In this document: piece after piece, positions 8,164-60,999 of the stretch
How positions within the stretch are numbered: position 1 is the stretch's first letter
Layout of the letters: the number at the start of each line of letters is the position of its first letter
Assembly (NCBI RefSeq): GCF_036588685.1
Contig: NC_086377.1
Coordinates: forward strand, 29,326,001 to 29,390,000
From: Mytilus trossulus
Lineage: Eukaryota
Reading direction: 5' to 3'
Length of the DNA: 64,000 nucleotides
The notes under the pieces: generated by a model
Seen by the model: only the letters and a program-made list of their open reading frames with translations
The model's database searches: none
Told to the model about the DNA's origin: nothing
Position numbers and translations under genes: made by a program

Positions 8164-9191
8164 TTTATTTAACACAATAATTACCTGGATTTACTTACCG
8201 GGCTGAACTACGTTCACTATTCACTTTTCGCTATTCAAAATTGATGAATAGTGAACTGTGTTTTTTGCACTATTCACTATTCAAGTTTATGAAATTGAAT
8301 ATATTTAGTATTAACTTGTATATGCACTGATGTGGTGCGCATGCCTGGACATCGAAAGACTTCCTTTATTTGAGCTCTTTATTTTGGTGAAATTCATACA
8401 TGTTTTACGTTCCAAAATCCACAAAAACTTTTTCAAACAGTAAACCAATCATAGAGATAACATTTTTCATTCAACATTTTTCAAAAAGTCAAATAATCAC
8501 AATTTAGACATTTCATTAGAATTGACAGTAACTACCGCCAATATCAGTCACATGACCAAACAAATATACCGGAAGTAAACACACATCACATTTACTATCC
8601 TGTCTCACGGCTTTTCTATCGTTCTACTAACATGGTTGAACAGTGAGTAAGTAATACCCAGTACCCTTGAGTTGCCCAAGGGACGACGACTAACTTGTGT
8701 TACATTTATTTAACAATCTTACTATATATTTTCTCTGCACTTCGGCACCATCTCAGTTCGTGCCATGTGAAACAATTTGTTCGGTCTGTAATGCGCATGC
8801 GTCATTTATCTATCAATCGATAGGTTTAAATTTACTATAGACTTATATAGGACAATGATTTATATTCCCTTATTTCATAAACTAACCTTTGATTTTTTTT
8901 TTCTCGTCGTTGTTAAATAAAGTTAATTTGTTGTTTTAGCTTTAAATTGATGTAAAAATTATGAAAATAAGAAATTTAAAACATCCGTTTTTTTTTATTC
9001 AAAAATTACTATCATAAATAACGAAATAAACCATATTTATGTATACACAAATACGGAATTTCTTGAAAACCGTGACTTCTTTTTCCTAAAATAAAAAATA
9101 GTATTACTATTTTTTTTTAATTTCGCGTTGTTTTTTTTGTTAACTTAACAGATGACGGAATATAATGGTGTATTTGTCTTAAATATTACTA

Positions 9192-9671
9192 TTGCTCTTT
9201 ATCAGTCTTTTTATGATCAAAAATTGTATAATAACCAAAATGTTCCCAAATATAATAGTGGTTAGTGGTATACCGCAAACTGAAGAGGAAGATTTACTGC
9301 TGAAAGTTAACGATTTAATGAAAGCCCTAGGGGAAGATGTATATTCAAGTATGAACATAACACATGTAAATCGCTTTCCGTCTAAAATAGAAAACCGCCC
9401 CGGAATTATTAGAATAAGCTTTAGGGACCCTGGTGAAAAAAGTCTGGTTCTTAGAAACAAACGTAATTTAAAGGATATTGAACAGTACAAAAACGTTTAT
9501 ATTAGAAGTAGCAAATCACGCATTGAACGTTTAATAGAAATGAATGCCCGAGCAGTGCTTCGCAAGCTACCCGAAGGCGGTTCATTACGTGTGGATGCTA
9601 GTGGTCGTATCAAACCTCGGATTCAGAGAGTTCAAGATCAGCAGCAAGTTCGTAATGAGAATGGTGAATAG
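9192..9671 (+). CDS. LINE ORF1 C-terminal part (RRM/Tnp22-like)
   Basis: IVVSGIPQTEEED...RPGIIRISF...VLRNKRNLK...VYIRSS, typical of the LINE ORF1 RRM-CTD; true start missing. Confidence 0.75.
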   Translation: MLFISLFMIKNCIITKMFPNIIVVSGIPQTEEEDLLLKVNDLMKALGEDVYSSMNITHVNRFPSKIENRPGIIRISFRDPGEKSLVLRNKRNLKDIEQYKNVYIRSSKSRIERLIEMNARAVLRKLPEGGSLRVDASGRIKPRIQRVQDQQQVRNENGE

Positions 9672-12600
9672 GATTTAACCCGGTCGAACGAATCAATAAA
9701 ATTAGGAACAATTAACATATGTGGATGAACGAGAGATAATTGTGAATTAAGAAAAGGTATCTTCAAATCGATTAACTGTGATATAATTTGTGTTTGCGAA
9801 ACGCATTTAGCTAAAGATGATGTTATTAATGTACCTGGATTTTCTTGGTTTGGTTTTAACAGAGTTGATATACACAAAAAAGCACCGAAACCATCTGGCG
9901 GGATAGGAATTTTAGTTAAAACATGGATTCTTGAACATTATAACGCATCAGTTATTGACAGATCATCCGATGGTATTTTAGGATTAAAATTTGAAAATAG
10001 AACGAATGATTCCAACTTTTTAGTATTTGCATGTTATCTTCCTCCTGAAAATTCATCTAGAGGCCGTGATGCTCCGAGTTTTTTTTGCTCACTTACTAGC
10101 ACAGATATATTTAAATGACGAATGTGATGCAATATTGCTTACAGGGGATTTTAATTCGAGAATTGGATCATTACCAGATACACTGAACGATATAGACTGT
10201 GTTCCAATGAGAAATACAATCGATAAAAGCATTAATCAGCACGGTCACGAATTTATAGACTTCCTCAATAAATCGAAATTTTGTGTATTAAATGGAAGAT
10301 TTCAGGGTTGTGACAATTTCACCGAGAGGCAAATCCGTGGTTGACTATATTTGTGTTCCTCATGACGTGTTTGATAAATGTAAAACGTTTGAAGTGCTTA
10401 CGGCGGAATCTATCGTTAATAACAATTCTTTGTTTGGATTATTAGGTGGGAAATCAAGACTACTCGACCATTCATTATTAATTACAGAGTTTACGGTCAC
10501 GCATTTTGAACAGGCGGTTTCGACAGATAATGAGATGAAAAGAGCACGATTTAAAATTAACCAAATACCGTTAGACTTTATGAGTAGTGAGATACGGAGA
10601 AATGCCTTGATGAATATTATCACTGACATCGAACACTCGCGAGAAACTCAGGAAAACATTGACGTGATTTATGAAAATTTATGCACCGAGATAATCGCAG
10701 AAATGACCGATAAAATCCCACAATATTGTAACTATAACTCTAAGAAGCGTTTTCGAACAAAAAAGCCGTACTGGAACGAAACTCTGACTGAACTTTGGAA
10801 TAAGATGCGTACATGTGAAAAAGATTTCGTCAAGTATTCTGGGAGGAGAAATATTAAAACAACTTTGCGCAATAACTACATGCAAGCTAGAAAATGTTTC
10901 GACAAAAATCTAAGACGGGCAGAACGTACCTATAGAAGAACAGTAGCGGTAGAAATAGAGACAATGACGAGCAAAAATCCAACTGACTTTTGGGAAAAAA
11001 TACGTAAATTAGGACCTAGAAGTAACAAATGTATACCACAGGAAGTCGTTGATGATGATGGTACTATAACTAGATCTGAACAAAAAGTTTTGGAAAGATG
11101 GCGTTGTGATTTTGAAAATTTATACAATGGTTTGTCGAGTGATGAATTTGATTCAGAACACTATACTCAAGCTAAAGTACACAAAAACCTATTAGAGGAA
11201 AATATGGAGGACCCTTTGTATATGCCGAATAATCTTTTAAATGAGAACATATCAAGAAATGAAATAAATGCTATAGTAATGCAAGCGAAACTTCGATCTG
11301 CAAGTGGATATGACGAAATACCATACGATGTTTTAAAATTTCCTGTAGTTATTGAAATAATACACAATCTTTTTCAACTGATTTTTGACTCGAGTTTAAT
11401 TCCGTCCGCCTGGAGAAAATCCATAATTTGTCCTATATTAGAGGATCCGTCGTCAGATGCACGTATTCCGATGAATTACAGAGGAGTCAGTCTATTGTCA
11501 TGTGTAAGCAAACTCTATAGCGCATTTGTTAACAAGAGATTATCAAGTTTTCTAGAGACTGAAAATATTCTTGCAGATGAACAGAATGGGTTCAGGAAAA
11601 ATAGGTCTTGTGAAGATCATATTTTTACCTTAAACAGTATTGTGAGAAACAATCACAACGTCTTTGCGGCATTCATTGACTTAAAAAAGTGCTTTGATTT
11701 CGTTGATAGAGACATGATGTTGTATAAGTTGCGCTTAAATAATACAGACGGCAAAATTTACAATTCAATTGAAAGCATTTATCAGCATACAAGCTCCTGT
11801 GTGCGTATCAACAATAAGCTGACGAATTGGTTTGACTGTAAATCCGGCGTAAAACAAGGGGATAACGTTTCTCCGACACTTTTCTCTATCTTCATCAACG
11901 ATTTGGTTAAAGAAGTAAATGATTTGAATTTAGGATTTGATATTAATGGAAGACAAATTTCACTTCTACTTTACGCTGATGATATTGTTATGTTCGCAAA
12001 AAGTGAGGATGAACTTCAACAAATGTTAAAATGTGATTCATAGCTGGTGTAAACGTTGGAGGGTTCTGATCAACACGGACAAATCTAAGTGCGTGCACTT
12101 TCGTAAAGGACGTAAAAAGCAGAGTGAATTTAACTTTTCAATCGGCAATAATGCGTTAAAAACAGTGGACGATTATAAATACTTAGGTGTAACTTTTAAC
12201 TGTAAAGGTAACTTTAATTTACATGCAGAGACTTTGGCTAAAGGTGCAGGAAGAGCCTTAGGTAAAATTATCTCGAAAATCCATAGTTTAAAGGATTTTG
12301 GTTTTCAGTCTTATGAAAAACTTTTTAATTCGTGTGTTACTCCAATCCTCGACTACGCATCTGGAATATGGGGAAATAGGAAGTTCCAATCAATAGACAA
12401 CGTACAGAACAGAGCAATTCGATATTACTTAGGCGTTCACAGATTTGCACCAATTCTAGCACTGTACGGGGATACTGGATGGATACCAAGTCAGTTTCGG
12501 CATTGGGTAAACATTATTCGCTACTGGAATAGGCTATTATCGTTTGAAGACGACCGATTAACGAAAGTGGTGTTCAATATGGATTATGATCGTTGCACAA

Positions 12601-13434
12601 ACAATTGGTGTAGTGACACTAAAGATATTTTCACGGAACTTAATATGTTACATTATTATGAAAGTAGAACAATGGTGGATTTAAAATCTTTTGAACAAAT
12701 TGTACGAACTCATTACAGTGATATATGGAGAGAGTCCTTGATAAATAAGCCAAAGCTACGATCTTACTTAAACTTTAAAACAAACTTCGAACTAGAGCAC
12801 TATGTAAAACTAAATCTTACGAAACACGAGCGATCTGTGCTAGCCCAGTTTAGATGCGGGATATTACCGATCAGAATTGAGACTGGTAGATATATTGGGG
12901 AACCAGTAGAAAACAGACTATGTCGTTTTTGTAACTCTCAAAATGTTGAAAGTGAGCTACATTTTCTTATAAACTGCACATTTTATAATGATATCAGACA
13001 AACTGTTTTTAGCGAGATATTAATGGTGCCTGACTATACGCAACTAGATGACCAGGGAAAATTAACATTTCTAATGGTGAACCATCCAAGGAAAATAGCT
13101 AAATACTTAGCAGCGTCACTTTTCCGTAGAAAACAAACAGTTTACTCTAGTTAACATTCTTAAACTTTTTTACAAACTTTAGATGAATTTATCATTATAT
13201 GAACTTTTACAATCGTACGTTAATTCTTAATCTATAATTATCTGTATTTAAATTTAAATTGGCAATTGACACGTGATATTAGAACATTTATATTGAACTA
13301 AAAGTAAAAGGTGACTTAATGGTCCATTGGGCCGGGTGTATCATATATGTAACTATATTTTGTACAAATTTATATATTTATGCTGACTTACACATGTCAC
13401 GTTAATAAACAATTTACTTACTTACTTACTTACT
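9250..13434 (+). mobile_element. Non-LTR retrotransposon (L2/CR1 group), 5'-truncated
   Basis: ORF1 fragment, APE endonuclease, RT, C-terminal Cys/His motif, 3' UTR with AATAAA followed by (TTAC)n tail at about 13414-13434. Confidence 0.9.
9672..13154 (+). pseudogene. LINE ORF2 (APE endonuclease + reverse transcriptase), one in-frame stop and about 3 frameshifts
   Basis: LGTINICG, DIICVCETHL, GDFNSR, SVVDY, DHS (APE); YRGVSLL, QNGFR, FIDLKKCFD, GVKQG, LLYADD, YKYLG (RT); ETGRY..RLCRFC..ESELHFLINC. Confidence 0.92.
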
Positions 13435-13970
13435 ATAATACGCTGTAATATAAAGGCCTAGGGAAAACTTGTATTGGTATGAAATACTAGGGTTTATCTC
13501 TATAAGGTTAAAAAGACAAAAAATATTGTATTATTGAAACAAGTACAATGTATGTACAATCTAAGAATAAAAAATATAGTTAGTAGAATATCCCAGGTGT
13601 TTTGTATAATAAAAAAATGGCATTTGTTTGTTTCCATGATAGAGGATAGAATATATCATCAATGAATAATGTTAAAAGTTTAGTTTAAGCTATACAAATA
13701 AATATAAATATATATATTTTAATATTGTTAAAAAAAATGACGAAAGCTGCAGAAACAAATAATGACATAACACACACAAGACTGACATTTTGCAGAGGAC
13801 TATGTATAATAAATTGCCGTGGATTTATGGCTTCATAGCGTAAACTGTGGCATCTTCGTGAAGAGATATTTACAATAAACAACAATTGGATTAGGTAAAT
13901 TGATAGCGGCAAGCATATTATTTTAATAAAATATTTGTTTACGAGAACAAATTACAGTTTACCGTTGAGC

Positions 13971-14141
13971 ATGGCTGCTTCACATCATAATCTTCGTCCA
14001 AAATCAGACATTAATTGGAGAAAACTTTGTTTTGGTGAACCACTGCCACACCAAAAGAAAAGGATACTCGAACAGAGACACACCTTACCAGAAACATATC
14101 ATATCGAAAGAATCATTACCAAAAAAAGTGTTCCCGTACAG
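13971..14141 (+). pseudogene. Chromodomain-protein gene, exon 1
   Basis: ATG at 13971, 57 codons ending TYHIERIITKKSVPVQ, phase-0 donor CAG|gtatat; supplies the first strand of a chromodomain. Confidence 0.7.
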
Positions 14142-14234
14142 GTATATTTTTTTATATTTTTTTATTAAAATAAGCGAAACCTGAAACTACTTTAACACAT
14201 CCTATAGTAGTCTCAGGCGAAACTGAGAGAATTA

Positions 14235-14402
14235 AGAGATAACTGTATTGTATTTGAAGCTTTGCGGACGTCCATCGGTAGTTTTACTGTCGCAAATTGA
14301 GTTTACCTGGCGACGCGGAGCGGAGACAGGTAAACGGATATTTGCGACAGTAAAACTACCGATGGACGTCCGCAAAGCTTCAAATACAATACAGTTATCT
14401 CT
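14235..14402. repeat. Long hairpin: ~63-bp perfect inverted arms plus inner gtttacctg/caggtaaac stem
   Basis: agagataactgtattg...tcgcaaat (14235-14297) is the exact reverse complement of 14340-14402. Confidence 0.95.
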
Positions 14403-14725
14403 ATTCTAATTCAAGTTCTCCTATCCTAGCTTAACCTAGTTTTATTGATCCAATTTGAATGTTTACAATGTACGTTTCATGGCTATTTACGTTATCCAAC
14501 CGCCAAGAAATAGTTCCTTTACCTGAAGTCAAAAATTAAGCTTGTGTGAATAATTTTTTAATATCATAGTAATAAGAGGTGAAAAACTATACTTTTAAGA
14601 AAAATCACAATTTATTGAACAAGAAATAATAACGTAAATTTCAAGTCCTCTCGTCGAGTTTTATCGAGCATTGTCAACTGTCATGGCCGATCACGCAGAG
14701 GTGCGATGAAGATAAACAACAAAAT

Positions 14726-17700
14726 CTACGGCTGTGCAGCGTTCCCTGTTATGTTGTAGTTGAAAACTTGGACAGTTGAATTATGGACTTCAAACTGTTT
14801 GTTATACAAAACAGGTAATGACATTTGATTGTTAATTTGTGTGGTGTTTGTAAAATTCAAACAGTGTGCGTTGAAGGGATTAGCTGGATTTGGCGGTAAG
14901 GGCATTGCATTTGACTGTGTACAAATTGGCACTGGTGCGGTTGAACCCGATTTATCACTACCATTTTCAGTATTGCCAAGTAGAATAGCAGAATACTGCC
15001 TCTTCTGTTTCTCAGAGGAGTCCTGATAGTAGGATTCCAAACTGGCCTCTGACTTGTGTCCTGTTATCTTCATTATGTCTGTTTTTGGCACACCTGACTG
15101 TGCCAAAACAGTCACAGTTGTTGCCCTCACACAATGGTTTGTGTATATTTGACTAAGTCCAGCACTTTTTGATATGTCAACCATCATGTTGTTCAACAGT
15201 CTTTCCCCTACAGGCCTTGATGTGTACCACATCTCATCCTCATAATTTACTTTGGCTCTTGGTTGTTGAAAGAAAATGTCTGATGTAGGGTTCCTTTTAG
15301 CAAGGTATTGCGTCAAGGCAGCAACGGGACAGTCTGGCTTTTTTGTTTCATACATCCTAGGTTTTATAATGTTTTGATTGTCATCTAGTCCCCCTTTATG
15401 ATTTTTTGTCGTCTCACTCACTGCCATCTCTACATAACGACGGCCACAATCATCTGATTTAATGACAAATGTTTTGTCAGTGAAAAACCTTTGGTTTTCC
15501 CGTCCCCTCCTTCCAAAACTCAAAACTAGATCAAACCAAATTTTTCTTTGAAGAGTCTTAGGGTTTTGAGTTGATAAGGCATCTGATGACCTTAGTTTTT
15601 GCAAATCACCTTCTGAAATGGATGAATGATGTTTGGTCCTGTCCATTCCTTCCCTCTGAACCTTCTTAATCATGGCCAAAAACATTTTATTTGATTTAAG
15701 AAAAGCTGAATCATCAGACATGATGGAATACGTCTTATTAAAAGGTGGTGCCCGAAGATATCTATTTATAGATGCCCGAATCCCAACTAAAGTACTCTTT
15801 GCATAATATTCTCCGTCTGTATTTCGGACCTCAGCATAGAATTCAGTCAAGGCATCATTCAATTGTTGAATTGTATAATTTTCAAATGTTGCATCTTTCT
15901 CTCTATCGGTTAACCACTCTGAAATTAAGAATTATGATACATGTATTGAAATTTTTATACTTTATTTTATGCAATATAAAATTGAGAATGGAAATGAGGA
16001 ATGTATTAAAGAGACAACAACCGACCATAGAATGCATGCATGTGGCAAAAAATGAACGTTAAAACTACAGATGGATGTCCAAAAGCTTCAAATACACTAA
16101 CATGTATCTCATTAATTAAGAGATAACTGTATTGTATTTGAAGCTTTAAGGACGTCCATCGGTAGTTTTACTGTCGCAAATTTAGTTAACCTGGCAACAC
16201 GGAGCCCTTTTTAGGATTTTTTTTTAATTTGTTATGTTTTCCATGCGTTTTTAATGCAAGAAAACACTTAGCTTATGTACGTGTAGTCATAAACAAAGGA
16301 AATTTTCCTATTACATTTCTTTGACATTGTATGATATAGCTTGTAAATTGTTGAAGAATTAAACATTATATAGTCTAATTTTCCTTTCTTTTTATCAATT
16401 TAGCATTGTTTAACTTCTTTATATATTTTGCAGGTGCTACATGTAAATAAAAATGGAAGTCTCGTAAACTGTGTAAAACTAAGTAGCATGCGAATGATGT
16501 ACATATAACATACAAGTGCAACGCATGATTAAACTGGATATGAAAAATTCATATAAAAGGCAATGTTGGAAGACGTGACAAAAGAAAACATTAAAGTCTA
16601 TAAAAAGAAAGGACCAGCTGATCAAGATACATATGCATGATATATATGTATGCTAATTGTCATGAAGAAATTTAGGAAGTTTTATAATTGCTTGTTGAAT
16701 TGATTGTGGATTTCAAGGTATCTTGTGTAATACCATTATAATAGGAAGATACATGTATGTGTGCAAACATGATGTTGGGATGTATAACAGTATTTTAAAT
16801 TCAGCAAATTTCATGAAATAACAAGTGAACAGAAATTTCAATCTTATGCATGCAGAAATATTAGACGAAAACATATTGAAAATTGTACATTGAACACTTG
16901 CAATTGCACGAAGTTAGTGTTTGCAATGTCAAATGAATGTATAAAGTTTAGTTTTATGGACAGTTTATATATATACCATGGCCAAAATGGACAGTAATTA
17001 GCAGTGATTGCGGAAACCTTTTTAAGCTATATGCAGATTTATTTTGTTAATGATTACAATTATATTTTTTACGTTGTTTTTTTAAAACATGTTAAAAGGA
17101 AAAGGAATTCCAAATACATACAAATCTTTATTATATACATCAATTTATTTTAGTTTTAACACATACGCCTAAATATCTTTACTCCATATTTAGTTTGCTT
17201 CTTTGTAGATTTGCTCAGTGCCTCGTCTAGTATATTTTCTTTCTCATTTGATGATAATATTGGGAACCTCCCGCCAGTTGTCTTCTCTTTGTTGTCTTTT
17301 GCTATACTGTCAACCACCTCCATCATGTCAATTAAATCTTGGTCTTTTTCTGGATCATTAACCAGTTCCACTGTAATAAATATATATGACTATGGTCAAA
17401 TTATGAACTGGCTTACTGTTTATTCAGAAATAATAAATTAGTGCGATCTTGTAATTTTATACCTGATTCGTTTTAATTTTTTGCAATATTAAGAAAAATC
17501 CTGATTAATTTGATTCATACATGTATATAAAAAAGACGCAAGTTTTAATTTTTATTGGTGATTATTCTTTTGTTTGAATTGTTTTGTATTGTCTAATCTG
17601 GGCCTTTTATAGCTGACTATGTGGTATGGGCTTTGCTCAGCCTCATTGTTGAAGGCCGTTGTTAATGTTTGTGTCATTTTGGTCTGTTGTGGAAAGTTGT

Positions 17701-18614
17701 CTAATTGGCAATCATACCACATCTTCTTTTTTATATGACCAGGGCTGTCACTGTTTTTCGCAATAATTTTACACAGAAATCATGATTGAAAAATTTATAT
17801 TGAGTTTGATTTGCATTAGAGAAAACTGTTGGGAAAACTTGCATTAGACTAGAGATACATGTAGCTGTATTATATTTGAAGCTTTCCAGACATCCATCAG
17901 TAGTTTTACTGTGGCATATATCTGCGCTCCGTGTCGCTAAGTAAACTGAATTTGCAACAGTAAAACTACCGATGGACGTCTGTCTACAAGGCTTCATTTA
18001 CAATACTGTAATTTCTTAATTAGAAACTTTGGGTTATTTCCCCCAGCATTTTTTCCCTGAATTTGATTTGACAGAGAACCCCCCTTTTCCCCAAAGCCAA
18101 ACACAGAGAAAGGAATAAAAAGTTTGAAACAGCTACAGTGATCAATATTAGAACATGCATTTTAAAGGGAAAGTGAATTATGAAGTTCTTAATTAAAGAA
18201 AGCCTGAATATTTCCCGTTTATTGTTACGGGATGTACATGTAGGGTGTGAAAATGTTTGACATGCTCCAGCCTAGGAAGAAATAATGGTATAAAAGTATG
18301 TAAGGGTCAAGGTATAAGCTGTGCAGATTAAAATCTGCTTAGAAATTGTTAATTTGAAACCTACAAGCAACTCCATCAGTAGGGTTATCACCCAAGGCAC
18401 CACTTGTGTCTGCGTCGTCTGCTGTCTCCACTGCCGGTACTGCCGTATGTTCATCTTGATCGGCTTTTGACCCTTCTCCTGTTGTTTCTTGGGGTACAGA
18501 TAGATCAGCCGATTCCAACCCATCCATAAAATCTGTTTCCAAGAGGAAATTTGGCATCAACGGGCCCAAAAGATCTAGTTCTGTCATGTCAAAATCGTCG
18601 TCTGACGTAGCCAT
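14726..18614 (-). CDS. Crypton tyrosine recombinase (DUF3504-like), 3 exons: 18614-~18365, 17370-17168, 15918-14726; appears intact
   Basis: Catalytic R (FGRRGREN), K (TKNHKGG), HxxR (TNHCVRAT), H/Y (ITGHKSEASLESY); GT-AG junctions phase-compatible (ttacag|TGGAAC, AGGC|gtatgt, tttcag|AGTGG). Confidence 0.85.
16061..16205. repeat. Degenerate rearranged copy of the Crypton terminal hairpin arms in intron 2
   Basis: Right-arm copy (aaaactacagatggatgtcc...tatctc) + attaatta + left-arm copy (agagataactgtattg...tcgcaaat). Confidence 0.85.
17851..18022. repeat. Degenerate inverted copy of the Crypton terminal hairpin in intron 1
   Basis: Both arms recognisable; loop gctccgtgtcgc is the reverse complement of gcgacgcggagc (1 mismatch). 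Confidence 0.85.
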
Positions 18615-19258
18615 TGTTATTGTTTTGCGAAGTATTTATGTCACAAGATTCATACGCGAGGAATTTTGTTAAGCGGCTCCGACAGGTACATTGTAATTGT
18701 ACGCTTGACAAGAGCCAATGAGAAAGCGTGTTACATAAAGATTGCATTAGAATAAAGATTATCCAAAATAGTCTCTCAGGTGTTAACTTAAACGACTCCG
18801 GAAAACAAGTCATTTATAAAGAGTTTTGCTACTTTGTTGTTCTTAATTCAGATTTTCTGTATACATGTATTAATCAAGAATATAATGATATATAGGAACA
18901 TACACTTTAATAAGACATATCTTTATAATATGTCCGACAGTCTTTAAACAGATTATACATACGCAAAGCATGTATATTAAAATTGGCAATCTAATTAAGA
19001 AAAATCCGTGCATTGTTTAATACTAGTACATGTTTGTTTTGAACTATCTATTCTAAGTTTCATGGATAAATATATATATTAAAATAAATAAGATGAATAG
19101 CTTTTATTAAAGCTGATCAGATTTATTAAATCGAACTAATTAGATAATCGTCCATTTATCTTATTTAGCAATGTATGCATCTAATAAAATAAAAATATAA
19201 TTCTATATGTATTAAAGTGCAAAACACATTTCTATAGATGCGTGTACATGTATCAAAC

Positions 19259-19296
19259 CAGAGACATATAATATATATATATATTATATGTCTCTG
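19259..19296. mobile_element. 38-bp perfect palindrome with 7-bp direct repeats (minimal MITE-like insertion)
   Basis: atcaaac|cagagacatataatatatatatatattatatgtctctg|atcaaac. Confidence 0.65.
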
Positions 19297-20129
19297 ATCA
19301 AACATATACCGGGTAGAACTCAGATTGTTCGCCTCAGGGAGTGATGTGTGTAAAAGTTATTTATTTGTCACATTGTTGTGAAGATATTCGTTTTATATTT
19401 CTGATAAATAGGCATGACCCCGAGGTGTAACTAATCAATTATGTAAATTACATGCAGTGTCTGAATATGTTTGTTAAAATCTACTGGAATTAAAATATCT
19501 GTAACATACTATAAATATGTAGTTTTATGGCAGTTAAGATTTGAATTGAATTTAACAATCGACATCATATCAGACATTTTTTACTTAAAGAAAGGTATTG
19601 TGTTGATAAACTACAGTTATCAGGAAAGACATTTTGTAGATAATTGTGTTCAAAAAGTATTAGAGTTATTCATGTCAATTGACAAACATTACAAACATAT
19701 CGATATGATAACATGTAATAATTTATGTGGCATGAATATATATGAATCGTGCTTTATACAAGAGCCTGAAAAGGGACATTGTGCGTTAGTCTTAAACAAG
19801 CCATTTGTTGCATGAGGGAATAATTTAAATTAAAACGCTCGTGCCACCCTATAACTCATATTAGACTCCAATATCATCAAACGTAGGCTGCCGTGTTATT
19901 CATACTCGTGCCATGCATACACACATTGTTTTTCTTCCAAATGTCCGATTCATGTTAGTTCTTTGTACTATTTGAATAAGAGCCCAACTAACAATAAATA
20001 CAATAAAAAAGAGAAAACACTAACACATGAGAGAAACTTCATCAGCTAGCACATTTTGCTTTATTGTTTAGACTACTTAATGATTATACAAAGCTTGTAA
20101 ACTAACGGTTTCTGTATATGTCTTTGCCG

Positions 20130-20607
20130 GGTTTGTTGTATCTGGTGAAATGGGAAGGTTTTCATGAAGATGATAGTACATGGGAACCGCAATCAAAGCT
20201 TGATGCAGAATCTATGTCCAATTTCTTTCCTGCTTTTATCAGTTTTGATCGGTTAAACAGCGCTGCCAGATTATTTGAAGAAGTCATACAGCAGAGACTA
20301 AGACTTAAAAATAGAACAATATCAAGTAATCTCCGATTTGACCTGAATGTGTATCGCTATTGTTTTAATACAGACGAATCCATTCGGATAGATTCCGTAG
20401 ACAGCCTGAAAAAGCTTCCTCTTTCAAATGGCTGTAACTATAAATTGAACAAACAGGGTTTATGGGCAAATAATAACCTTTCCCTTTCGATTAAGACCAA
20501 AACTGCAGATGAGGAAAATTTTTTTGCGAAAAGATGACGGGTCAGTGGAAACAAAATACAGACCTATAGAAATTGTAAAAATAATTTCTGCCAGCGAGTC
20601 TTTCTGA
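20130..20607 (+). pseudogene. Chromodomain-protein gene, exon 2 (acceptor mutated, late frameshift)
   Basis: GLLYLVKWEGFHEDDSTWEP is the canonical chromodomain core; branch-like actaac at 20101 and ccg in place of cag at 20127-20129. Confidence 0.75.
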
Positions 20608-20643
20608 AGTAGTAGTGTACATAAATTTATTCAATCCACCAAA

Positions 20644-23600
20644 ATGTCGGACAATTTAACAACACAAGACAGAAAGCTAACAGAAAACTTTTTACAAATA
20701 GGTACGCGATTGCCGGTATTGGCTAAATCATTTGTTTCTAACAACAAAATTGTGCTCACTTTGGAAATAAAGTATCCGTTCCTGCGAAAATTATCAACCT
20801 CCAATTTCAAGTATCCATATCTATATTACGTAGACATTATCAATTCGCAACATGGATTTCTTCATCTTAAACAATGTGAAAGATTAGAAAAACGATTTTA
20901 TACCGTCTTTAAAGATATAGCTCAACTTTATAAAAACTAGAGGCTCTAAAGAGCCTGTGTCGCTCACCTTGGTCTATGTGAATATTAAACAAAGGACGCA
21001 GATGGATTTATGACAATTTTGTGTTTTGGTGATTGTAATGTGTTTGTACATCTTACTTTACTGTATATTCTAGCTGCTAACAATTATCTCTATCTATAAT
21101 GAACTTGGCCCAGTAGTTTTAGTGGAAAATGTTAGTAAAAATTTACAAATTTTATGAAAATTGTTAAAAGTTGACTATAAAGGACAATAACTCTTTAGGG
21201 GGTCAATTGACCATTTTGGTCATGTTGACTAATTTTAAGGTATCACTTTGCTGTACATTATTGCTGTTTACAGTTTATCTCTATCTATAATAGTATTCAA
21301 AATAAAAACCCAAAATGGAAAAATGTCCTCAAAATTACGAATTCAGGGGCAGCAACCTAACAACAGAATTTCCGATCCATCTGAAAATTTTACGGCAGAT
21401 AGATCTTCACCTGATAAACATTTTCCTTAAGCCAGAATTGCTGTAAATGCTTTGGTTTTTGAGTTATAAGCCAAAAACTGCCTTTTACACCTTTGTTCTA
21501 TTTTTAGACTTGGCGACCATCTTGGTTGGATTGCCAGGTCATCGGACACATTTTTTAAACTAGTTACCCCAAAGATGATTGTGGCCAAGTTTGGATTTAT
21601 TTGGCCCAGTAGTTTCAGAGAAGAAGATTTTTGTAAAAGATTACAAAGATTTACGAAAAATAGTTAAAAATTGACTATAAAGGGCAATAACTCCTAAAGA
21701 GGTCAACTGACCATTTTGGTCATGCTCACTTATTTGTAAATCTTACTTTACTGAACATTATTGCTGTTTACAGTTTATCTCTATCTATTACAAATGTATA
21801 ATATTCAAGATAATAACCAAAAACAGCAAAATTTCCTTAAAATTACCAAATCAGGGGCAGCAACCCAACAATGGGTTGTCAGATTCGTCTGAAAATTTCA
21901 GGGCAGATAGATCTTGACCTGATAAACACTTTCACTCCTTTTAGATTTGCTTTAAATGCTTTGTTTTTTAGTTTTAAGCCAAAAACTGCATTTTACCCCT
22001 ATGTTCTATTTTTAGCCATGGCGGCCATCTTGGATGGTTGGCCAGGTCACCGGACACATTTTTTAAACTAGATACCCCAATGATGATTGTGGCCAAGTTT
22101 GGTTTAATTTGGCCCAGTAGTTTCAGAGGAGAAGATTTTTGTAAAAGATTACAAAGATTTACGAAAAATGGTTAAATATTGACTATAAAGGGCAATAACT
22201 CCTAAAGGGGTCAATTGACCATTTTGGTCATGTTGACTTACTTGTAAATCTTACTTTGCTGAACATTATTGCTGTTTACAGTTTATCTCTATCTATAATA
22301 ATATTCAAGATAATAACCAAAAATAGCAAAAATTTTCTGAAATTTACCAATTCAGGGGCAGCAACCCAACAACGGGTTGTTCGATTCATCTGAAAATTTC
22401 AGGGCACATAGATCTTGACCTGATAAACAATTTTCACTATATCAGATTTGCTCTAAATGCTTTGGGTTTTGAGTTATAAGCCAAAAACTGCATTTTACCC
22501 CATATGTTCTATTTTTAGTCATGGCGGCCATTTTGGTTGGTTGGCCGGGTCACGCCACACATTTTTTAAACTAGATACCCCAATGATGATTGCGGCCAAG
22601 TTTGGTTTAATTTGGCCCAGTAGTTTCAGAGGAGAAGATTTTTGTAAAAGTTAACGACGCAGGACGACGACGGATGAGAAAAGCTCACTTGGCCTTTTAG
22701 GCCAGGTGAGCTAAAAACAGTGGTGGCCGACAAAAAGCAAAGTCCGATTCAAAATTTACAAAAATTGACATATTCGAAAATGACATTCTTCCATCATCTG
22801 AGCTCACTTCATCGTTAGAAAAATTTGCAGAGGAAAACGTATCACTTGCCGATCAATGTAGGATTCTATCAAAGCAAATCAAAGAATCCGAGGAGCAAAG
22901 AAAACTAGACAAATCAGCAGCAAATATTTCAAAACATCATGAAATAGACCCTATTTTGATAAATCATGGAAAGAAGTTTAAGAAGCTGGTAGAACTCAAC
23001 GATACGAAAAAATCAAAACACTGACAAACAAAGTCGACAAGGCTTTGTGGTTTTTCGAATCGTATGGACTGAAACCTTCTAGTTTTAAACTAACTACTGT
23101 ATCAGGAGAACCAGTCAAACAGTTAGATCTAGCAGACAAAGATGATGAAACCCGTATGAGCATGGATCTGGAGAAAATGAAGGCAGTATTATTTATTTTA
23201 GACAAGTTTAAAATCAGTGACCAGGCTTACCATGAAATAGTTAGGAAAACCGAAGATCTGCCACGGCTTCATTCAATCGTGAGTTTAAGAGAGAAGACGA
23301 ATAGTACGTTAGAAATATATCGCACAACAGGCAATATTCCAGGTGCATTTGTCAGCCTTAAGTCAGAGCTGGAGAATTGTTTAAAAAAATTTGAAACATT
23401 GCCATCGGAGACAATAAAAATAAAAATATAAGGGGACGGTACACGAGTTACTCGAATTTTATCGTTTTGTCATTTTCTATTATAAGTGAAACAGCAAAAT
23501 TGTCTGCAGACGAACAAACTGTTTTAGCTATTGTGAAAACGTCAGAAAGCTATGAAAACCTTTCTTCATCTCTACATCCAGTTTTCAGTGAAATAAACGA

Positions 23601-24686
23601 ACTGTACCATTCAGGAAGTATACAAATCAATGAAAACATTTACAAAATTCAGCTTTTCTTTGGGGGAGATATGAAATTTTTGCAGATATGTTTAGGAAGT
23701 GGCTCATCGACTGGGGAGTATGCTTGTGTGTGGTGTAAAGTTTCGAAGTTTGACAGAGGAGACATCAGTAAGCCATGGGACTTTTACTTAGCACCCGATA
23801 TGAAGCGACCCATTTCCGAGACAAAAGTACTATCTCGATCGTCGAAGAAGGGATATGGAGTAAAGCACATCCCTCTGCTCACGTTTGAACCAGAACACTG
23901 TGTCCCAGATGAACTTCATCACTGTGTCCCAGATGAACTTCATCTATTTATGAGATTATTCGATGTTTTACTCCGTGATGTGATCGACGACGCTAGACAT
24001 AAAGATAGTATGGCTGATGTAAACGAAGAAAAGGGGGATTATCTGAAACTTGTAGTAGCCAACATCCGAAAATGTGGTGTCTCCTTTGATACTTTGACAG
24101 CTAAAGGACAGACTGGACTCGATTGGACGTCTCTTTGTGGAGCAGATATGAAAAAAGTTATGAAAAGTTTACCCGACCTGCTTATGTTCGTTATACATAA
24201 CGAAACCCATGACACAGTTGTTAAAATTGTGGAAAGATTTTTGGCATATTTACCAGTATATTTGCTCAAACGAATGCGAGAGTCGTACCGGAGAGACAAC
24301 ATCCACTCTGGTTAAGGACTGGATAACTCTTTTTTTGAGTTTGTACGGAAAAAGGAAAGGCTATGCTAAACATTACCTCGTATATCCACTGTCTGATCTA
24401 CCACGTCCCGTTCTTTTTCTCGACATATGGAAGCTTAAGACAGTTTAGCGGCCAACCAACAGAAAAAATCAACGACAGTATCAAAACGATACATCATGCA
24501 AAGACTAGTTTCCAAGATTGCACAGTGGATGCCCTGAAAGTGAGAAAGAGAATTGAGATGAATTTAGGTAACGAAAGAACAAGACGTCCATATGAAAAGA
24601 AAAAAAACAGACTATGGGGAAGATACAATCAAATTTATTCGAACCAAGGAGGTTATATTAGAAGGAGAGAGGACGAAAGACGATAA
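20644..24686 (+). pseudogene. RAG1/Transib-like DDE transposase, frameshifted and interrupted by a Helentron-like insert
   Basis: IKIK.GDGTRV (first D), FFGGDMKFL...EYACVWCK (second D + CxxC), PDELHLFMR, TSYIHCLIYHVP (HxxxxH), GSLRQFSGQPTEKIN (E): same order as the RAG1 core; frame continues across 20936-22713. Confidence 0.8.
20936..22713 (-). mobile_element. Helentron-associated non-autonomous element (HINE-like) with ~500-bp internal tandem repeats
   Basis: Terminal hairpin ggctct-aa-agagcc, subTIR gctcacc/ggtgagc, inserted in an A-run without TSD; internal unit recurs at about 21173, 21673, 22181. Confidence 0.8.
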
Positions 24687-24732
24687 TTACACATAAAATG
24701 TTACCGACTTTTCAATAAGTGGGTGTTAATTA

Positions 24733-25075
24733 GTTGAGATCGACTCTGTCACAGAGGGAGATTTTGTCCTAATTACATACCCGAGTAAGAACGGAAACAC
24801 CCGAGGTGTCATAAACTGACCGGCTATACACCGGATGTTTACAGTTACCATATACCAGTCATCAGCTGATCATGGACGACGATATATTTATAAGTGAAGC
24901 CGAAATCCTTGGAGCTTGAAAAAGAATTCGATGTCGAAACGTTTTGCATATGCAAGTCAAATAACTCCAGACCTGATTTGCTATTCGAATGATGACTGTG
25001 AAATTAATTTCTATCACAGAAAATGTGCAGGTGAACCACCCGTAAATGAAGGATGACCTGTTTCACCTGTCGTGG
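24733..25075 (+). pseudogene. Decayed PWWP/Tudor-like segment followed by ING-type PHD finger
   Basis: VTEGDFVLITYP...VIN*PAI; FCICKS..[fs]LICYSNDDCEINFYHRKCAG...[W]TCFTC reconstructs a C4HC3 pattern. Confidence 0.6.
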
Positions 25076-25605
25076 CATCCAACACCCACAGATGCTTTAC
25101 AGTTCAGGTAATAATTTCCCGCGAAAGTTTCTCTGTACTTATTTAATAATAATATTTCAATATATTCGTAAATACTGCCTCTAAGTAACTGGGAGGTAAG
25201 AAAAGGTAATAAATATACCGAGTAATTTGAATAAAATGTCTTTCAAACAGTAGTAAATATAATGTAGAGTTTCACATTGCACGAGTGTATGTATTGCTCG
25301 TAATGTATTGGGGTTTACATAATAGAGAATAATGAACATAAATTTAAACTAGAGAGAATGACGAGATACTAAAATATACTGAATAAAGTTGATGAGATTA
25401 TAGAATAAAATGAAAGATTACAAAAATAAACCCCCTCCCCTTTTCACCATCCATGCACTCTTATATTTTAAACAAGGAGGTCATACATGTATATAACCTT
25501 GATGTTAATGTTCTTCTTTAGCGCAGGAAAATATTTTGTTCTTTAAATATGAAAATGATTATATTTGTTGCTACACTATTTTGTTGAACATCACAATACA
25601 TTTAC

Positions 25606-28700: not shown

Positions 28701-29264
28701 ACAACAGATTCTCTAGGTAGAATGGATCTGTATCGGCTTTATCTGAAAAGAATAAATTTGAATTAAGATTGTTTTGTACTAGTTCAACGAGTCCAGTGAT
28801 AAATGTAATCATGCCAAATAACTCTAGTGAAGTTTTATATATTAAACTAATTATCAATGACCTGGCCATATCTATAGGCAATTAGAAAGTTGATATGGGT
28901 CTCTAAAATACAGACATGGTACTAATTCAAAATGAAAGGACAAGGGATAAATAGGCATATTCCTGACTTGGTACAGGACATTATTCAAAACAAATAATGG
29001 TGTGTTAAACTTGTTTTAAGGCATGCCAAACCTCCCGCTTGTGTGGCACAGCCATTAAATCTAAGTAAAATAGAGTAATAGCAGGACAACCATGCCTTCA
29101 TTGTCCTTCATCTAAAAGTCACAGTCAAATATTTTTTTTAAATACGAAACAACTTACATACTGAGTACTAAATACACCCTCCCTCGTTTTGCTATCAAAG
29201 GGGGAGAGATAAAATATCGACAACATTTTGATTCATAAATTGCTACTGACCTATATCTGGATAT

Positions 29265-29622
29265 GGTTGACCTTCATCATGTACTGGTTGTTCCTCTTGT
29301 TCCTCTGGTACTGGTTGTTCTTCCTGACCTTCATCATGTACTGGTTGTTCCTCTTGTTCCTCTGGTACTGGTTGTTCCTCCTGACCTTCATCATGGACTG
29401 GTTGTTCCTCTTGTTCCTCTGGTACTGGTTGTTCCTCCTGACCTTCATCATGGACTGGTTGTTCCTCTTGTTCCTCTGGTACTGGTTGTTCCTCCTGACC
29501 TTCATCATGTACTGGTTGTTCCTCTGGTACTGGTTGTTTCTCCTGACCTTCATCATGTACTGGTTGTCCCTCTTGTTCCTCTGGTACTGGTTGTTCCTCC
29601 TGACCTTCATCTGGTACTGGCT
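29265..29622. repeat. 57-bp coding minisatellite (EEQPVHDEGQEEQPVPEEQ)
   Basis: Direct tandem units inside the transposase exon. Confidence 0.95.
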
Positions 29623-32519: not shown

Positions 32520-32934
32520 GGTTGACCTTCATCATGTACTGGTTGTTCCTCTTGTTCCTCTGGTACTGGTTGTTCTTCCTGACCTTCATCATGTACTGGT
32601 TGTTCCTCTTGTTCCTCTGGTACTGGTTGTTCCTCCTGACCTTCATCATGGACTGGTTGTTCCTCTTGTTCCTCTGGTACTGGTTGTTCCTCCTGACCTT
32701 CATCATGGACTGGTTGTTCCTCTTGTTCCTCTGGTACTGGTTGTTCCTCCTGACCTTCATCATGGACTGGTTGTTCCTCTTGTTCCTCTGGTACTGGTTG
32801 TTCCTCCTGACCTTCATCATGTACTGGTTGTTCCTCTGGTACTGGTTGTTTCTCCTGACCTTCATCATGTACTGGTTGTCCCTCTTGTTCCTCTGGTACT
32901 GGTTGTTCCTCCTGACCTTCATCTGGTACTGGCT
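32520..32934. repeat. 57-bp coding minisatellite, one unit longer than the 29265 copy
   Basis: Direct tandem units; ORF translations differ by 19 aa. Confidence 0.95.
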
Positions 32935-59407: not shown

Positions 59408-60999
59408 ATCTCTATCCTCTGCTGGTCATATTTGTCCTTCAACTGTTGTGAGGTAAAGTATTTCCAATTCGTAAAGCTTTTAGGACTTTTTACTATTCTT
59501 GAATTCCCGCTAGATGTGCCTCCCTTGATATTATAACAGAGTTGCATCCCTTTAAGAAGTACGAGTATTTCCCCTAACCGAACTAATGGTTCAGTATGAC
59601 AGACCATTAAAAAAATTAGTAACAACAAAAACAAAATGCAAATCATAAACACAGTACTTATTACTATAGCTGTGACGACTCTAACAGCAAAAGTACTGAA
59701 CCTTAGCACTACTATCAATTACATCAATGATCTGACAAGACAAAGTAGTCGGCACTATAACAGCAGTTCTTCAGACAACTCTTGGTCAATCACAAGTCAA
59801 GAACAAAAAAGGCAAACATATCTACCCTCTCAATAAACATCAGTATAAGGAGAGGCAGAGAAATAAAGCATAATAAATTAGTACTTACTTACCTATGTAG
59901 TCTTCTCTTAGTAAATTCTTATGCGCCTTAGCCAAACCCAGGTCCTTCAAAATACCCCTGCGGTTCTTGTTCTAAAGCAGTCACATGGAGACAAACAGCA
60001 GTCTGCTGTGACACATGTGATGAATGGTATCACAACAAATGTGAAGGTATTGATCAGCACATGTATAAAATCCAAAATAATAGCAACATCTCTTGGGAAT
60101 GCATTAAATGTGGCATGCCAAACTTTTCTATCACATGTTTTAACACCACTATTGAAACATCAAATAGCTATGCAGACTTAAGCACAGATGATAACACACG
60201 AAGCTTAGTTCACATCAAAACACCAACTCATACATCATCACCAATACTCAAACAAAAATCAAAACCATTTAAACAGAATAAGAAACAAAGTACAGTTCCA
60301 CCTCTCCGTGTACTCACTATTAATTTTCGATCAATAAAAAACAAAAAGCCAGAAATTGATGAGATGATAGACTCGTGAAAACCTGATGTTATATTTGGAA
60401 CTGAAACTTGGCTTTCAAATGACACATCAGCATATGAATATATTTCTCCATCCAAATACACCAAAAAAAGGAAAGATGGTTATGGAGGTGTGCTACTCGC
60501 AATCACAAACACTTATTACATCACATGTGCCTGAATTAGACACAGATTGCGAATTAATATGGGCAAACATAACTCCAACGGGAAATAAAACCATCTATCT
60601 TGGAGCATATTATAGACAACCATCAGACAAACGGGAATCACTAGAACATCTATGTACCTCACTAAATAGGATATGAAACATATCCAGTGCAAATATCATG
60701 CTCAGTGGTGATTTCAATTTAGGCCATATTGACTGGTCAAATTCATCAGTAATACCTAGCAAACCAGATCCTTCTCTTCATCAACACCTATTAGACCTAT
60801 TAGACATATTACAAGATCACAATCTCACACAGGTAGTTGACAAAACAACAAGAAATGACCGCACACTTGATCTACTGTGCATGTCAAATCCATCCCTAGT
60901 AAACAGAGTAGAAACATTACCACCACTGGGTGATCATGACATAATCTTCAGTGAAATTAATCTTTCCCTCTCGAAAGCCAAACAGTCACCACACAAAGT

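Follow-up and report, generated by a model that had tools for sequence, protein, structure and literature searches.

A probable two-gene Mytilus transposon that pairs a RAG1-fold transposase with a chromodomain protein

We analysed a 64,000-nucleotide stretch of the Mytilus trossulus genome (the window; contig NC_086377.1). It contains what is best explained as the decayed remnant of a Mytilus DNA transposon, a low-copy element of the cut-and-paste type with two genes on one strand, the first encoding a chromodomain protein (ORF1) and the second a RAG1-fold transposase (ORF2); we put the probability of this reading at about 0.8. In four subfamilies from Mytilus, the two genes have diverged together between shared inverted ends.

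Extent and state of the window copy

The decayed copy spans positions 8764 to 24643 and thus begins about 5 kb upstream of position 13971, where a preliminary description of this DNA had placed its start. After removal of nested insertions it is colinear, at 90-95% identity, with C3a, a better-preserved copy on another chromosome. The features are as follows.

8764..9257, +: left end of the transposon; first base of homology with C3a and a further copy, C17, outside which the flanks differ; the terminal inverted repeat opens CATGTGAAACAATTTGTTCGG, with the palindrome TGCGCATGCG about 30 bp inside the end
9258..13433, +: inserted LINE, foreign to the element; absent at the same point in C3a and C17
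10292-13154, +: reverse-transcriptase ORFs of the LINE (ORF list)
13434..14237, +: 5' region with ORF1 exon 1; 90% identical to C3a
13971-14141, +: ORF1 exon 1, MAASHH...ETYHIERIITKKSVPVQ, with ...YHIERII...; GT donor immediately after, at 14142
14238..18750, -: Crypton-bearing insertion in the intron of ORF1, foreign to the element; absent from C3a
14726-15862, -: tyrosine-recombinase ORF of that insertion; DUF3504 (2e-11), Phage_integrase (1e-7)
20130..20607, +: ORF1 exon 2, the rest of the chromodomain, LYLVKWEGFHEDDSTWEP; Pfam Chromo E 3e-8
20644..20936, +: start of ORF2, MSDNLTT..., matching two annotated M. galloprovincialis proteins, P0001 and P0003, at their N-termini
20937..22712, -: Helitron-like insertion splitting the ORF2 coding sequence, not part of the element; absent from C3a
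22713..24643, +: rest of ORF2, RAG1-like core; 95% identical to C3a
23432-23440, +: ORF2 GDG
23536-23562, +: ORF2 SESYE (equivalent of E662)
23656-23679, +: ORF2 GGD-M-K
23725-23736, +: ORF2 CVWC
23926-23949, +: ORF2 DELH
24387-24404, +: ORF2 HCLIYH
24450-24473, +: ORF2 QPTE
24644..24830, +: opening 188 bp of a MITE (about 925 bp, non-coding), foreign to the element; contains a GDFVL...PA segment
24894..25107, +: ING-like PHD pattern (C4HC3) that takes three reading frames to read, foreign to the element
59501..59597, +: probable right end, closing ...CCGAACTAATGGTTCAGTATG, in the same orientation as the left end

The two inserts that had been proposed to interrupt the genes were both borne out: the tyrosine-recombinase ORF in the intron has the expected domain matches, and the second insert, whose junctions are defined, carries on the minus strand a terminal GGCTC/GAGCC hairpin followed by CTAG, with internal repeats of about 500 bp. 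The LINE further upstream ends in an (ACTT)n tail.

That this copy is dead, as had been concluded from frameshifts and stops, is confirmed by at least five frameshifts and one stop, and additionally by the loss of its 3' end and an internal duplication of 24 bp. The stop, at 23429, and at least five frameshifts fall in ORF2, which by comparison with C3a also lacks about 65 C-terminal residues, including a SAP-like tail; exon 2 of ORF1 has one frameshift near 20460 (tblastn with the C3a ORF1). Beyond 24643, where homology to other element copies ends, about 35 kb of other DNA stands in place of the final 2.7 kb on the 3' side of the element. The segment at 59501-59597 matches the terminal 98 bp of C3a and C17 at 93% identity, with homology stopping at the same base, and probably represents the right end of the same element, both ends presumably deriving from one insertion; its right flank, like the left flank of the window copy, is unique in the genome.

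An intact element measures about 8 kb and has inverted repeats of about 20 bp at its ends, the shared ends being defined by drops in homology (three plus four copies). Transib elements generate 5-bp target duplications and have CACWGTG-like termini, the ends of Transib and RAG opening with CAC. The ends of the Mytilus element open with CAT, and no 5-bp target duplication was seen at them, any duplication being at most 3 bp; neither feature points to transposition of the canonical Transib kind. Duplications of 2-3 bp are reported for some Transib lineages in a 2026 preprint (10.64898/2026.08.26.747230), so that their length is known to vary.

ORF2, a RAG1-like transposase

Intact ORF2 comprises about 815-830 aa; its N-terminal region is predicted to be coiled coil, and its C-terminal tail is SAP-like. 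The transposase motifs pointed out in the preliminary description were found at their positions and correspond to invariant or nearly invariant columns of the family. A profile built from 26 family members gave RAG1 or RAG1L chains as all of its 14 best PDB matches (best E 5e-7), and its significant matches were confined to RAG1/RAG1L; it aligns with RAG1 D708, C727/C730, H937/H942, E962 and E662, in columns that are invariant or at least 90% conserved. An AF2 model of a natural 641-aa ORF2 (pLDDT 83.8) retrieved RAG1 (E 1e-15), BbRAG1L (3e-11), HzTransib (1e-8) and the P element (2e-4) with Foldseek. In VIA comparisons it aligned with the mouse RAG1 core (residues 460-1007) over 434 aa at Z 27.9 and 3.3 A rmsd, ahead of BbRAG1L (Z 24.7), HzTransib (23.1), the P element (13) and Hermes (9.6). 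Identity with RAG1 is 17-18% and the Pfam RAG1 match lies below threshold. Weak DUF1280 matches, none reaching the cut-off, were obtained for 3 of the 26 members, and in the nearest Atlas cluster 16% of members carry DUF1280. The profile and the predicted fold thus support the proposed assignment of ORF2 to the DDE transposases of the RAG1/Transib superfamily, with both the acidic D-E-D-E residues known from RAG1 and its Cys2-His2 zinc site.

ORF1 and the composition of the element

ORF1 is predicted to encode a protein of about 213 aa in two exons, the intron lying inside the chromodomain: exon 1 codes for the first strand of the chromodomain and the first residue of the aromatic cage. Exon 1 is conserved in every subfamily, retaining 37-49% amino acid identity in C12, C3b and C5d. 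Alignment A2 covers exon 2 in the four subfamilies. The cage residues (Y/F, W, F/Y) are retained in all four, which, together with the Pfam Chromo match, upholds the two-exon chromodomain gene as first described. The annotated M. edulis orthologue P0059 contains a complete Chromo domain (E 1e-11), the ORF1 profile matches HP1, CBX and CDYL chains at 1e-13, and the ORF1 model (pLDDT 86.7) superposes on the chromodomains of HP1, CBX7 and CDYL at 1.0-1.5 A. ORF1 is thus a stand-alone chromodomain protein of the HP1/Polycomb class with an intact aromatic cage. Its C-terminal 120 aa or so form a conserved domain in which no fold was recognised.

In all six copies examined, which represent four subfamilies and have transposases 38-92% identical to one another, both ORF1 exons lie directly upstream of ORF2. 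ORF1 is assigned to the transposon because the inverted ends shared by the copies enclose it and because it stands 36-110 bp upstream of ORF2 in each of the four divergent subfamilies of Mytilus. The two are separate cistrons. The 36-bp gap noticed in the window, from the stop codon of ORF1 to the start codon of ORF2, recurs in C3a, and the tandem arrangement on one strand reflects a stable association inside one transposon. On the other side, long ORF2 homologues from other sources (815-863 aa) show no chromodomain, and two locus scans for the pairing outside Mytilus gave no match.

A single fusion protein, made by ORF1-to-ORF2 splicing or read-through and carrying an N-terminal chromodomain where chromoviruses have a C-terminal one, seems unlikely. 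The two ORFs of C3a do share a frame, with one stop and 36 bp between them, and some automatic gene models (P0020, P0148, P0152, P0161) merge ORF1 and ORF2. However, in C12, C3b and C5d the frames differ and 78-110 bp separate the ORFs, P0020 needs a shift of frame to enter ORF2, and annotated transposases begin at the ORF2 methionine. Moreover, most ORF1-family proteins in public data stand alone, at 150-260 aa, in many 50%-identity clusters.

Far less probable still is the full model of the preliminary description, in which one transposon had recruited three reader modules, a chromodomain upstream and a PWWP/Tudor-like segment and PHD finger downstream of the transposase. Positions 24894-25107 do offer, on the strand of the transposase, a C4HC3 pattern like that of ING PHD fingers, but homology to other copies stops at 24643, where the MITE fragment starts, and at that place the C3a transposase runs on into its SAP-like tail and a stop. 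The GDFVL segment (24730-24816) lies within this fragment of a MITE with at least 40 genomic copies, 91-98% identical and sharply bounded; full copies measure 920-930 bp, have perfect 28-bp TIRs and no ORF, and every copy contains the GDFVL frame, which is accordingly a chance reading frame and not a module of the transposon. The PHD-like pattern requires two frameshifts to be read; its in-frame pieces gave no Pfam match, and its PDB matches were confined to the PHD fingers of ING3 and ING1 (E 0.6-0.9). Searches with DNA and with protein found it once in the genome, C3a and the other subfamilies lack it, and it is hence a unique broken relic beyond the truncation point, outside the transposon. 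The other copies of the element that were examined, proposed as a check on the adjacent modules, thus all contain the chromodomain and lack the PHD finger, so that of the several chromatin readers only the chromodomain stands, the other two being unrelated neighbouring DNA. Cross-subfamily tblastx detected ORF1 and ORF2 as the only conserved coding regions; with no third one there is no RAG2 or kelch partner, in agreement with the remark at the outset that no kelch domain was visible.

Relation to known systems and possible role of ORF1

The element with ORF1 and ORF2 shares with RAG1 and the RAG1L proteins of RAGL transposons (ProtoRAG) the RAG1 core fold and counterparts of D600, E662, D708, E962 and the zinc site. 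It differs from them in its low sequence identity, its CAT ends, the absence of a visible 5-bp target duplication, and the lack of the N-terminal zinc-finger/RING region in ORF2. Its pairing of a transposase with a separately encoded putative histone-mark reader recalls the RAG2 PHD finger; the partner, however, is a small chromodomain protein instead of a kelch propeller with PHD, and its gene lies upstream in tandem, whereas RAG1L and RAG2L are convergent. With Transib elements such as HzTransib it has in common the cut-and-paste mode, short inverted ends, few autonomous elements and the fold. In canonical Transib the transposase core is the sole product encoded (PMC4411706), in contrast to the Mytilus element with its second gene, coiled-coil region, SAP tail, CAT termini and duplication of at most 3 bp.

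Chapaev and Chapaev3 (CMC group) are, like ORF2, distant relatives of the RAG1 core, DUF1280 having been equated with Chapaev transposases and grouped with RAG1 (PMC3985635), and a duplication that is short or lacking agrees with the 2-4 bp given for CMC elements. Chapaev is, however, characterised by an N-terminal Chapa zinc-finger domain (PMC4411706; 10.64898/2026.01.24.700457). ORF2 lacks this domain, the N-terminus of P0003 being predicted coiled coil with very few Cys and His residues, and no family member reaches the DUF1280 cut-off. A chromodomain gene accompanying Chapaev was not reported in the Chapaev literature searched. Chromovirus integrases (Ty3/Gypsy) likewise place an HP1-class chromodomain in a mobile element, plausibly directing or conditioning integration with respect to methylated histone H3; theirs is fused to the C-terminus of the retroviral-type integrase of an LTR retrotransposon, while that of Mytilus belongs to a protein of its own, in a DNA transposon whose transposase has the RAG1 fold.

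By analogy with its relatives, ORF2 would cut the CAT-initiated ends by nick-hairpin chemistry. Homology suggests that ORF1 may bind histones and contact the transposase, acting as an accessory subunit that would read a methyl-lysine mark of the H3K9me3 or H3K27me3 class. A conceivable, less probable alternative is that ORF1 belongs to the element without targeting integration, and instead dampens the activity of the element by recruiting or mimicking HP1-type silencing, or counters heterochromatin silencing by the host through competition for H3K9me3. The data that mark ORF1 as a conserved accessory gene fit such a role equally well, and the low copy number (four full copies and one solo end in subfamily 2) is compatible with self-restraint; the conserved C-terminal domain, on the other hand, suggests a specific partner. 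The present data fit both tethering and a silencing-related role.

The two-gene element is new within the RAG1/Transib/Chapaev assemblage. From its sequence, ORF1 may have a chromatin-targeting role, its C-terminal domain tethering or gating the transposase on chromatin, much as the PHD finger of RAG2 serves RAG1 or the chromodomain serves chromovirus integrases.

Extent and decay of the window copy

Searching all six frames of the assembly with the longest uninterrupted transposase piece of the window (23467-24315) yielded at least 35 matches, some of them in copies with open frames of 620-765 aa, and six matching copies were taken with their flanks for comparison. The closest of these, C3a, lies on another chromosome and is colinear with the window in four blocks, with 90-97% identity. 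Given that the colinearity is interrupted, the three stretches between the blocks represent nested insertions:

8766-9257, block 1 colinear with C3a
9258-13433, nested LINE with RT ORFs and an (ACTT)n tail, located in the 5' part of the element
13434-14237, block 2 colinear with C3a
14238-18750, Crypton-bearing insert encoding a tyrosine recombinase (DUF3504 and Phage_integrase matches)
18751-20936, block 3 colinear with C3a
20937-22712, Helitron-like insert, with a minus-strand end consisting of a hairpin followed by CTAG
22713-24648, block 4 colinear with C3a

The RT-bearing ORFs of the LINE (10292-12043 and 12033-13154) overlap, as if one frameshift had split them. The preliminary description had proposed to splice out the inserts; these are real and their removal yields colinearity with C3a, but the Helitron-like insert breaks coding sequence and does not lie in an intron. 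Moreover, homology with C3a places the beginning of the element approximately 5 kb upstream of the start proposed there.

In the window, ORF1 (the two-exon chromodomain gene) carries one frameshift. ORF2 (the RAG1-like transposase gene), split by the Helitron-like insert, displays a stop at 23429 where other copies encode Ser, a 24-bp internal duplication resulting in HCVPDELH twice, and at least five frame changes. It also lacks its C-terminus, as the C3a ORF runs ~65 residues further to a SAP-like tail and a stop. M. galloprovincialis has a hypothetical protein with 97% identity to the transposase ORF of a sister copy. Homology of the window to the other copies ends at 24643-24648, and 98 bp matching the right end of the element lie at 59501-59597, co-oriented and bordered by unique sequence. 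The window copy probably extends from 8764 to 59597, ~35 kb of other DNA having taken the place of its 3' part. The DNA between the two ends also contains a tandemly duplicated minus-strand ORF (28582-30388 and 31837-33934; 381 and 478 aa), both copies of which end in a long EEQPVP(E/H) repeat tail.

Two further chromatin-reader modules, PWWP/Tudor-like and PHD, had been proposed downstream of the transposase. The former corresponds to a GDFVL frame in the 5' end of a non-coding repeat: positions 24644-24830 are the first 188 bp of a ~925-bp MITE with 28-bp perfect inverted ends (CCAAGGAGGTTATATTAGAAGGAGAG...) and no ORF. This MITE is a young, high-copy family, with at least 40 genomic copies that are 91-98% identical (full copies in L028-L031, e.g. 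L030:2157-3084). The GDFVL frame occurs in every MITE copy and is followed by a stop, and is therefore a chance frame; Pfam returned no match for its 29 codons. The PHD-like C4HC3 pattern (24894-25107) is spread over three frames, so that two frame changes are needed to read it, and its in-frame pieces had no Pfam match. Compared with the PDB, the 52-aa PHD-like piece retrieved only the PHD fingers of ING3 and ING1, at non-significant E-values (0.6-0.9). The pattern may be a real PHD relic, located within the ~35 kb of foreign DNA between the two ends of the element. It does not belong to the transposon family, since homology to the other copies ends upstream of it, the piece is single-copy in the genome at both DNA and protein level, and the elements hold no third conserved block. 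The idea that several readers had been recruited therefore holds for one of them, the chromodomain (6/6 copies), and not for the PWWP/Tudor-like and PHD-like pieces.

Sequence and predicted fold of the ORF2 transposase

Single-sequence searches of the PDB with the 282-aa piece of the window or the 641-aa ORF gave nothing meaningful, and Pfam returned no match for single Mytilus transposase ORFs. Among 5.8 billion proteins we found 58 relatives of ORF2, none of them named and none with a Pfam domain, from sources that include Mytilus species, Mercenaria, the nemertean Tubulanus and the sea star Patiria. One 754-aa member (record P0013) was submitted under a bacterial MAG, that of the clam symbiont Candidatus Thiodiazotropha taylori, and is probably misbinned host DNA. 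Searches for related loci, with P0010 in metagenome contigs and with P0013 in genome contigs, gave no matches.

A family alignment and profile were built from 26 of the 58 relatives. Catalytic and zinc columns of this alignment were invariant or at least 90% conserved: D177 (GDG), E216, D257 and K259 (GGDxK), C276 and C279 were invariant, and D337, L339 and H340 (D-x-L-H motif), H490, H495 and E515 nearly so. When the profile was compared with all PDB sequences, the 14 best matches were all RAG1 or amphioxus RAG1L (best E = 5e-7); RAG1 was reached in PDB searches only with the family profile, never with single ORF2 sequences. The profile-PDB alignment paired the following motifs:

GGDxK of the family with RAG1 GYDEK (D708)
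CxWC of the family with RAG1 C727/C730
HxxxxH of the family with RAG1 H937/H942
final E of the family with RAG1 E962
SESYE of the family with RAG1 DESDHE (E662)

Equivalence of the GDG Asp with D600 rests on its invariance and on structural span rather than on a printed residue alignment.

Pfam models recognized the family only marginally. RAG1 (PF12940) matched 4 of the 26 members below its gathering score (best E = 0.0017) and none of three Mytilus ORFs, while DUF1280 (PF06918) matched three members weakly (best E = 0.012, under the 25-bit cut-off). Genome scans with PF12940 (six-frame) and PF06918 gave zero matches; the controls were equally silent, which renders these scans uninformative. 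The ESM Atlas places the ORF2 family next to clusters of RAG1 and of proteins bearing DUF1280. A second database search with the family profile added neither further relatives nor annotated domains. A C-terminal SAP motif is present in five family members, and no zinc-finger families were found in ten long homologues. On inspection, the first ~190 residues of P0003, an annotated transposase, contain few Cys and His and are largely predicted to be helical or coiled coil.

The natural 641-aa ORF of C3a was modelled with AlphaFold2 (pLDDT 83.8) and compared with known structures.

Structural matches of the ORF2 model
RAG1: Foldseek E = 1e-15; VIA Z = 27.9, rmsd 3.3 A over 434 residues (RAG1 460-1007)
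BbRAG1L: Foldseek E = 3e-11; VIA Z = 24.7
HzTransib: Foldseek E = 1e-8; VIA Z = 23.1
P element (next fold after the RAG1/Transib group): Foldseek E = 2e-4; VIA Z = 13
Hermes: not listed by Foldseek; VIA Z = 9.6

The model displays the fold of the superfamily, i.e. an RNase H-like DDE core with inserted ZnC2/ZnH2 modules that is superposable on RAG1. Profile-RAG1 alignment, conserved columns and predicted fold confirm what the preliminary description proposed, namely that the motifs are those of the RAG1 catalytic core. Within the RAG1/Transib/Chapaev assemblage, ORF2 forms a separate family that lacks annotation. It differs from Chapaev (CMC), as compared via the Pfam model, in missing the DUF1280 cut-off, and further in the absence of the typical N-terminal Chapa (NZD-like) zinc-finger domain. 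DUF1280 has been equated with Chapaev transposases and grouped with RAG1 (PMC3985635).

The chromodomain gene and its relation to the transposase gene

All six copies examined have an ORF starting ...YLVKWxGF...TWEP immediately 5' of the transposase and in the same direction; they represent four subfamilies with transposases 38-92% identical to that of the window. Exon 1 of ORF1, with LPETYHIERII in the window, is retained by the four subfamilies at 37-49% identity, and exon 2 of the window copy matches Pfam Chromo (E = 3e-8). As representative of spliced ORF1 we used the annotated M. edulis protein P0059 (213 aa), a natural spliced product of one subfamily, in which the Chromo domain is complete (45 bits versus a cut-off of 25; profile positions 1-50 of 53). 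The aromatic cage is kept in the four subfamilies, with Y/F contributed by exon 1 and W and F/Y by exon 2. A profile of 28 ORF1 relatives matched the chromodomains of HP1/CBX5, CBX1, CDYL, CBX6-8 and SUV39H1 at 1e-13 to 1e-11, and the ORF1 model (pLDDT 86.7; about 96 from residue 40 on) superposed on those of HP1, CBX7 and CDYL with an rmsd of 1.0-1.5 A and 34-41% identity. The ORF1 chromodomain is of the HP1/Polycomb class with an intact three-residue aromatic cage, and methyl-lysine binding is predicted from sequence and model.

The C-terminal ~120 residues of ORF1 are also conserved and were modelled confidently as a domain consisting of a helix and a long beta-hairpin, which had no match of its own when the whole ORF1 model was used as query (Foldseek, wide VIA). 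With regard to a chromoshadow domain, all structural matches in this whole-model search fell within residues ~35-130. Searching 1.84 billion representatives with the ORF1-family profile revealed mostly stand-alone proteins of 150-260 aa (179 at E<=1e-10), with members in Mytilus, Mactra, Argopecten, the tick Rhipicephalus and the sea spider Nymphon.

In C3a, 36 bp separate the stop codon of ORF1 from the ATG of ORF2, which is in the same frame; this confirms the gap described earlier for the window. In the other subfamilies the gap measures 78-110 bp and the frames differ. The annotated transposases P0001 and P0003 begin at the ORF2 Met. The few gene models that contain parts of both ORFs are Mytilus predictions on decayed copies, and P0020 gets into ORF2 only via a shifted frame. 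Such joined models (P0020, P0148, P0152 and P0161, from Mytilus coruscus, M. edulis and M. galloprovincialis) have partly shifted frames or added host domains, P0161 being filed as 'Fibrinogen C-terminal domain-containing', and they look like annotation artefacts. Based on the differing frames, the starts at the ORF2 Met and the stand-alone ORF1 proteins, we conclude from these sequences that ORF1 and ORF2 represent two cistrons and not a fusion.

Element ends, placement and proposed function

Element ends were set by the drop of homology between copies. Subfamily 1 (window, C3a and C17) begins with CATGTGAAACAATTTGTTCGG and ends with ...CCGAACTAATAGTTCAGTATG, with an element length of 8.3 kb in C3a. 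Subfamily 2, known from four full copies of 98% identity and one solo end, measures 7.9 kb and has a perfect 18-bp inverted repeat, CATATGGCAGAATTTGTT. The ends of the two subfamilies are clearly homologous, and both carry TGCGCATGCG ~30-40 bp inside the left end only (window 8793-8802), a palindrome that resembles an NRF1-type site, and GTACGAGTTAT 30-45 bp inside the right end only. Placed asymmetrically near the ends, the two motifs may serve as promoter elements or be bound by the transposase. The ends do not resemble the RSS heptamer, as CATGTGAAACAATTTGTT and CATATGGCAGAATTTGTT share only the first CA with CACAGTG.

None of seven insertions showed flanking direct repeats of 2-9 bp at its ends. 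The C57 copy (C57:1042244-1050175) is inserted in a very abundant repeat, arrayed on C109, C142 and C7 (33.9-34.0 Mb). In nine empty paralogues of this site, compared by alignment coordinates only, the left and right flank alignments overlap by 1 base; the surplus is thus at most 3 bp, which rules out a 5-bp duplication at C57. CATATG was considered as a target duplication and rejected, since the C57 flanks abut directly in the empty paralogues and CATATG is element sequence. A general 2-bp duplication fits only one of four subfamily-2 copies, and a general 3-bp duplication, matching at 7 of 12 positions in total, is suggestive at best. The flanks of the window copy are unique in the genome on both sides, so that this insertion offers no empty site for comparison.

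Canonical Transib and RAGL elements have CAC termini and a 5-bp target duplication (PMC7204232, PMC4411706), from which the ends and target signature of the present element differ. The signature leans towards the 2-4 bp range of CMC elements. Duplications of 2-3 bp have also been reported within Transib (preprint 10.64898/2026.08.26.747230). The element further differs from RAGL in the absence of a convergent RAG2-like gene (kelch propeller, with or without PHD). ORF1 and ORF2 are the sole ORFs inside the elements that reach 150 aa, and tblastx between subfamilies revealed coding conservation only at ORF1 exon 1, ORF1 exon 2 and ORF2. There was no third conserved block on either strand, the 3' 1.5-2.7 kb being unconserved, and hence a third gene, be it RAG2-like, kelch, PHD or of another kind, is absent from the element, in line with the earlier remark that no kelch partner was visible.

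We found no report of a chromodomain gene in a Transib, RAG-like or Chapaev element in the searchable literature. According to Kapitonov and Koonin, canonical Transib transposases are without extra domains, and the superfamily has only Chapa and RING (PMC4411706). We rate the element as a two-gene variant within the RAG1/Transib/Chapaev assemblage, set apart by its chromodomain gene.

From its homology to RAG1, Transib and hAT enzymes, ORF2 is expected to bind the inverted ends, to nick the flanking DNA and convert it into hairpins, and to insert the liberated 3'-OH ends. Because of its intact HP1/Pc-type methyl-lysine cage and its conserved second domain, ORF1 is most likely an accessory subunit, which would tie the transposase to H3K9me3- or H3K27me3-marked chromatin for target choice or licensing. 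Its proposed functional analogues would be the PHD finger of RAG2 and the chromodomains of chromovirus integrases. The main rival explanation assigns ORF1 a regulatory or anti-silencing role. For the accessory-subunit reading in its full form, namely that this transposase branch independently evolved a two-subunit recombinase in which a separately encoded HP1-type chromodomain partner ties cutting or integration to a repressive methyl mark on histones, we estimate a probability of roughly one in three (0.35). Such a recombinase would be a convergent counterpart of RAG1 together with the H3K4me3-reading PHD finger of RAG2. ORF1-family proteins are also present in other bivalves and in chelicerates, and the partnership may extend beyond mussels to these groups.

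RAG1 is active only together with RAG2, a partner that recognizes H3K4me3 through its PHD finger. Any account of the origin of V(D)J recombination needs to explain how and why a RAG1-type transposase became dependent on a chromatin reader. The family described here would provide a second natural case in which a RAG1-fold transposase is encoded next to a histone-reader protein of its own, differing from RAG1/RAG2 in reader domain and gene order and probably also in the histone mark. Reader coupling would then be a recurrent solution and not a one-off. Its two genes are small, its ends are defined and the genome holds near-identical copies with open frames, which makes the element a tractable system for the function of a reader subunit; it also belongs to a sizeable unannotated transposase family without a Pfam model that is present in marine invertebrates.
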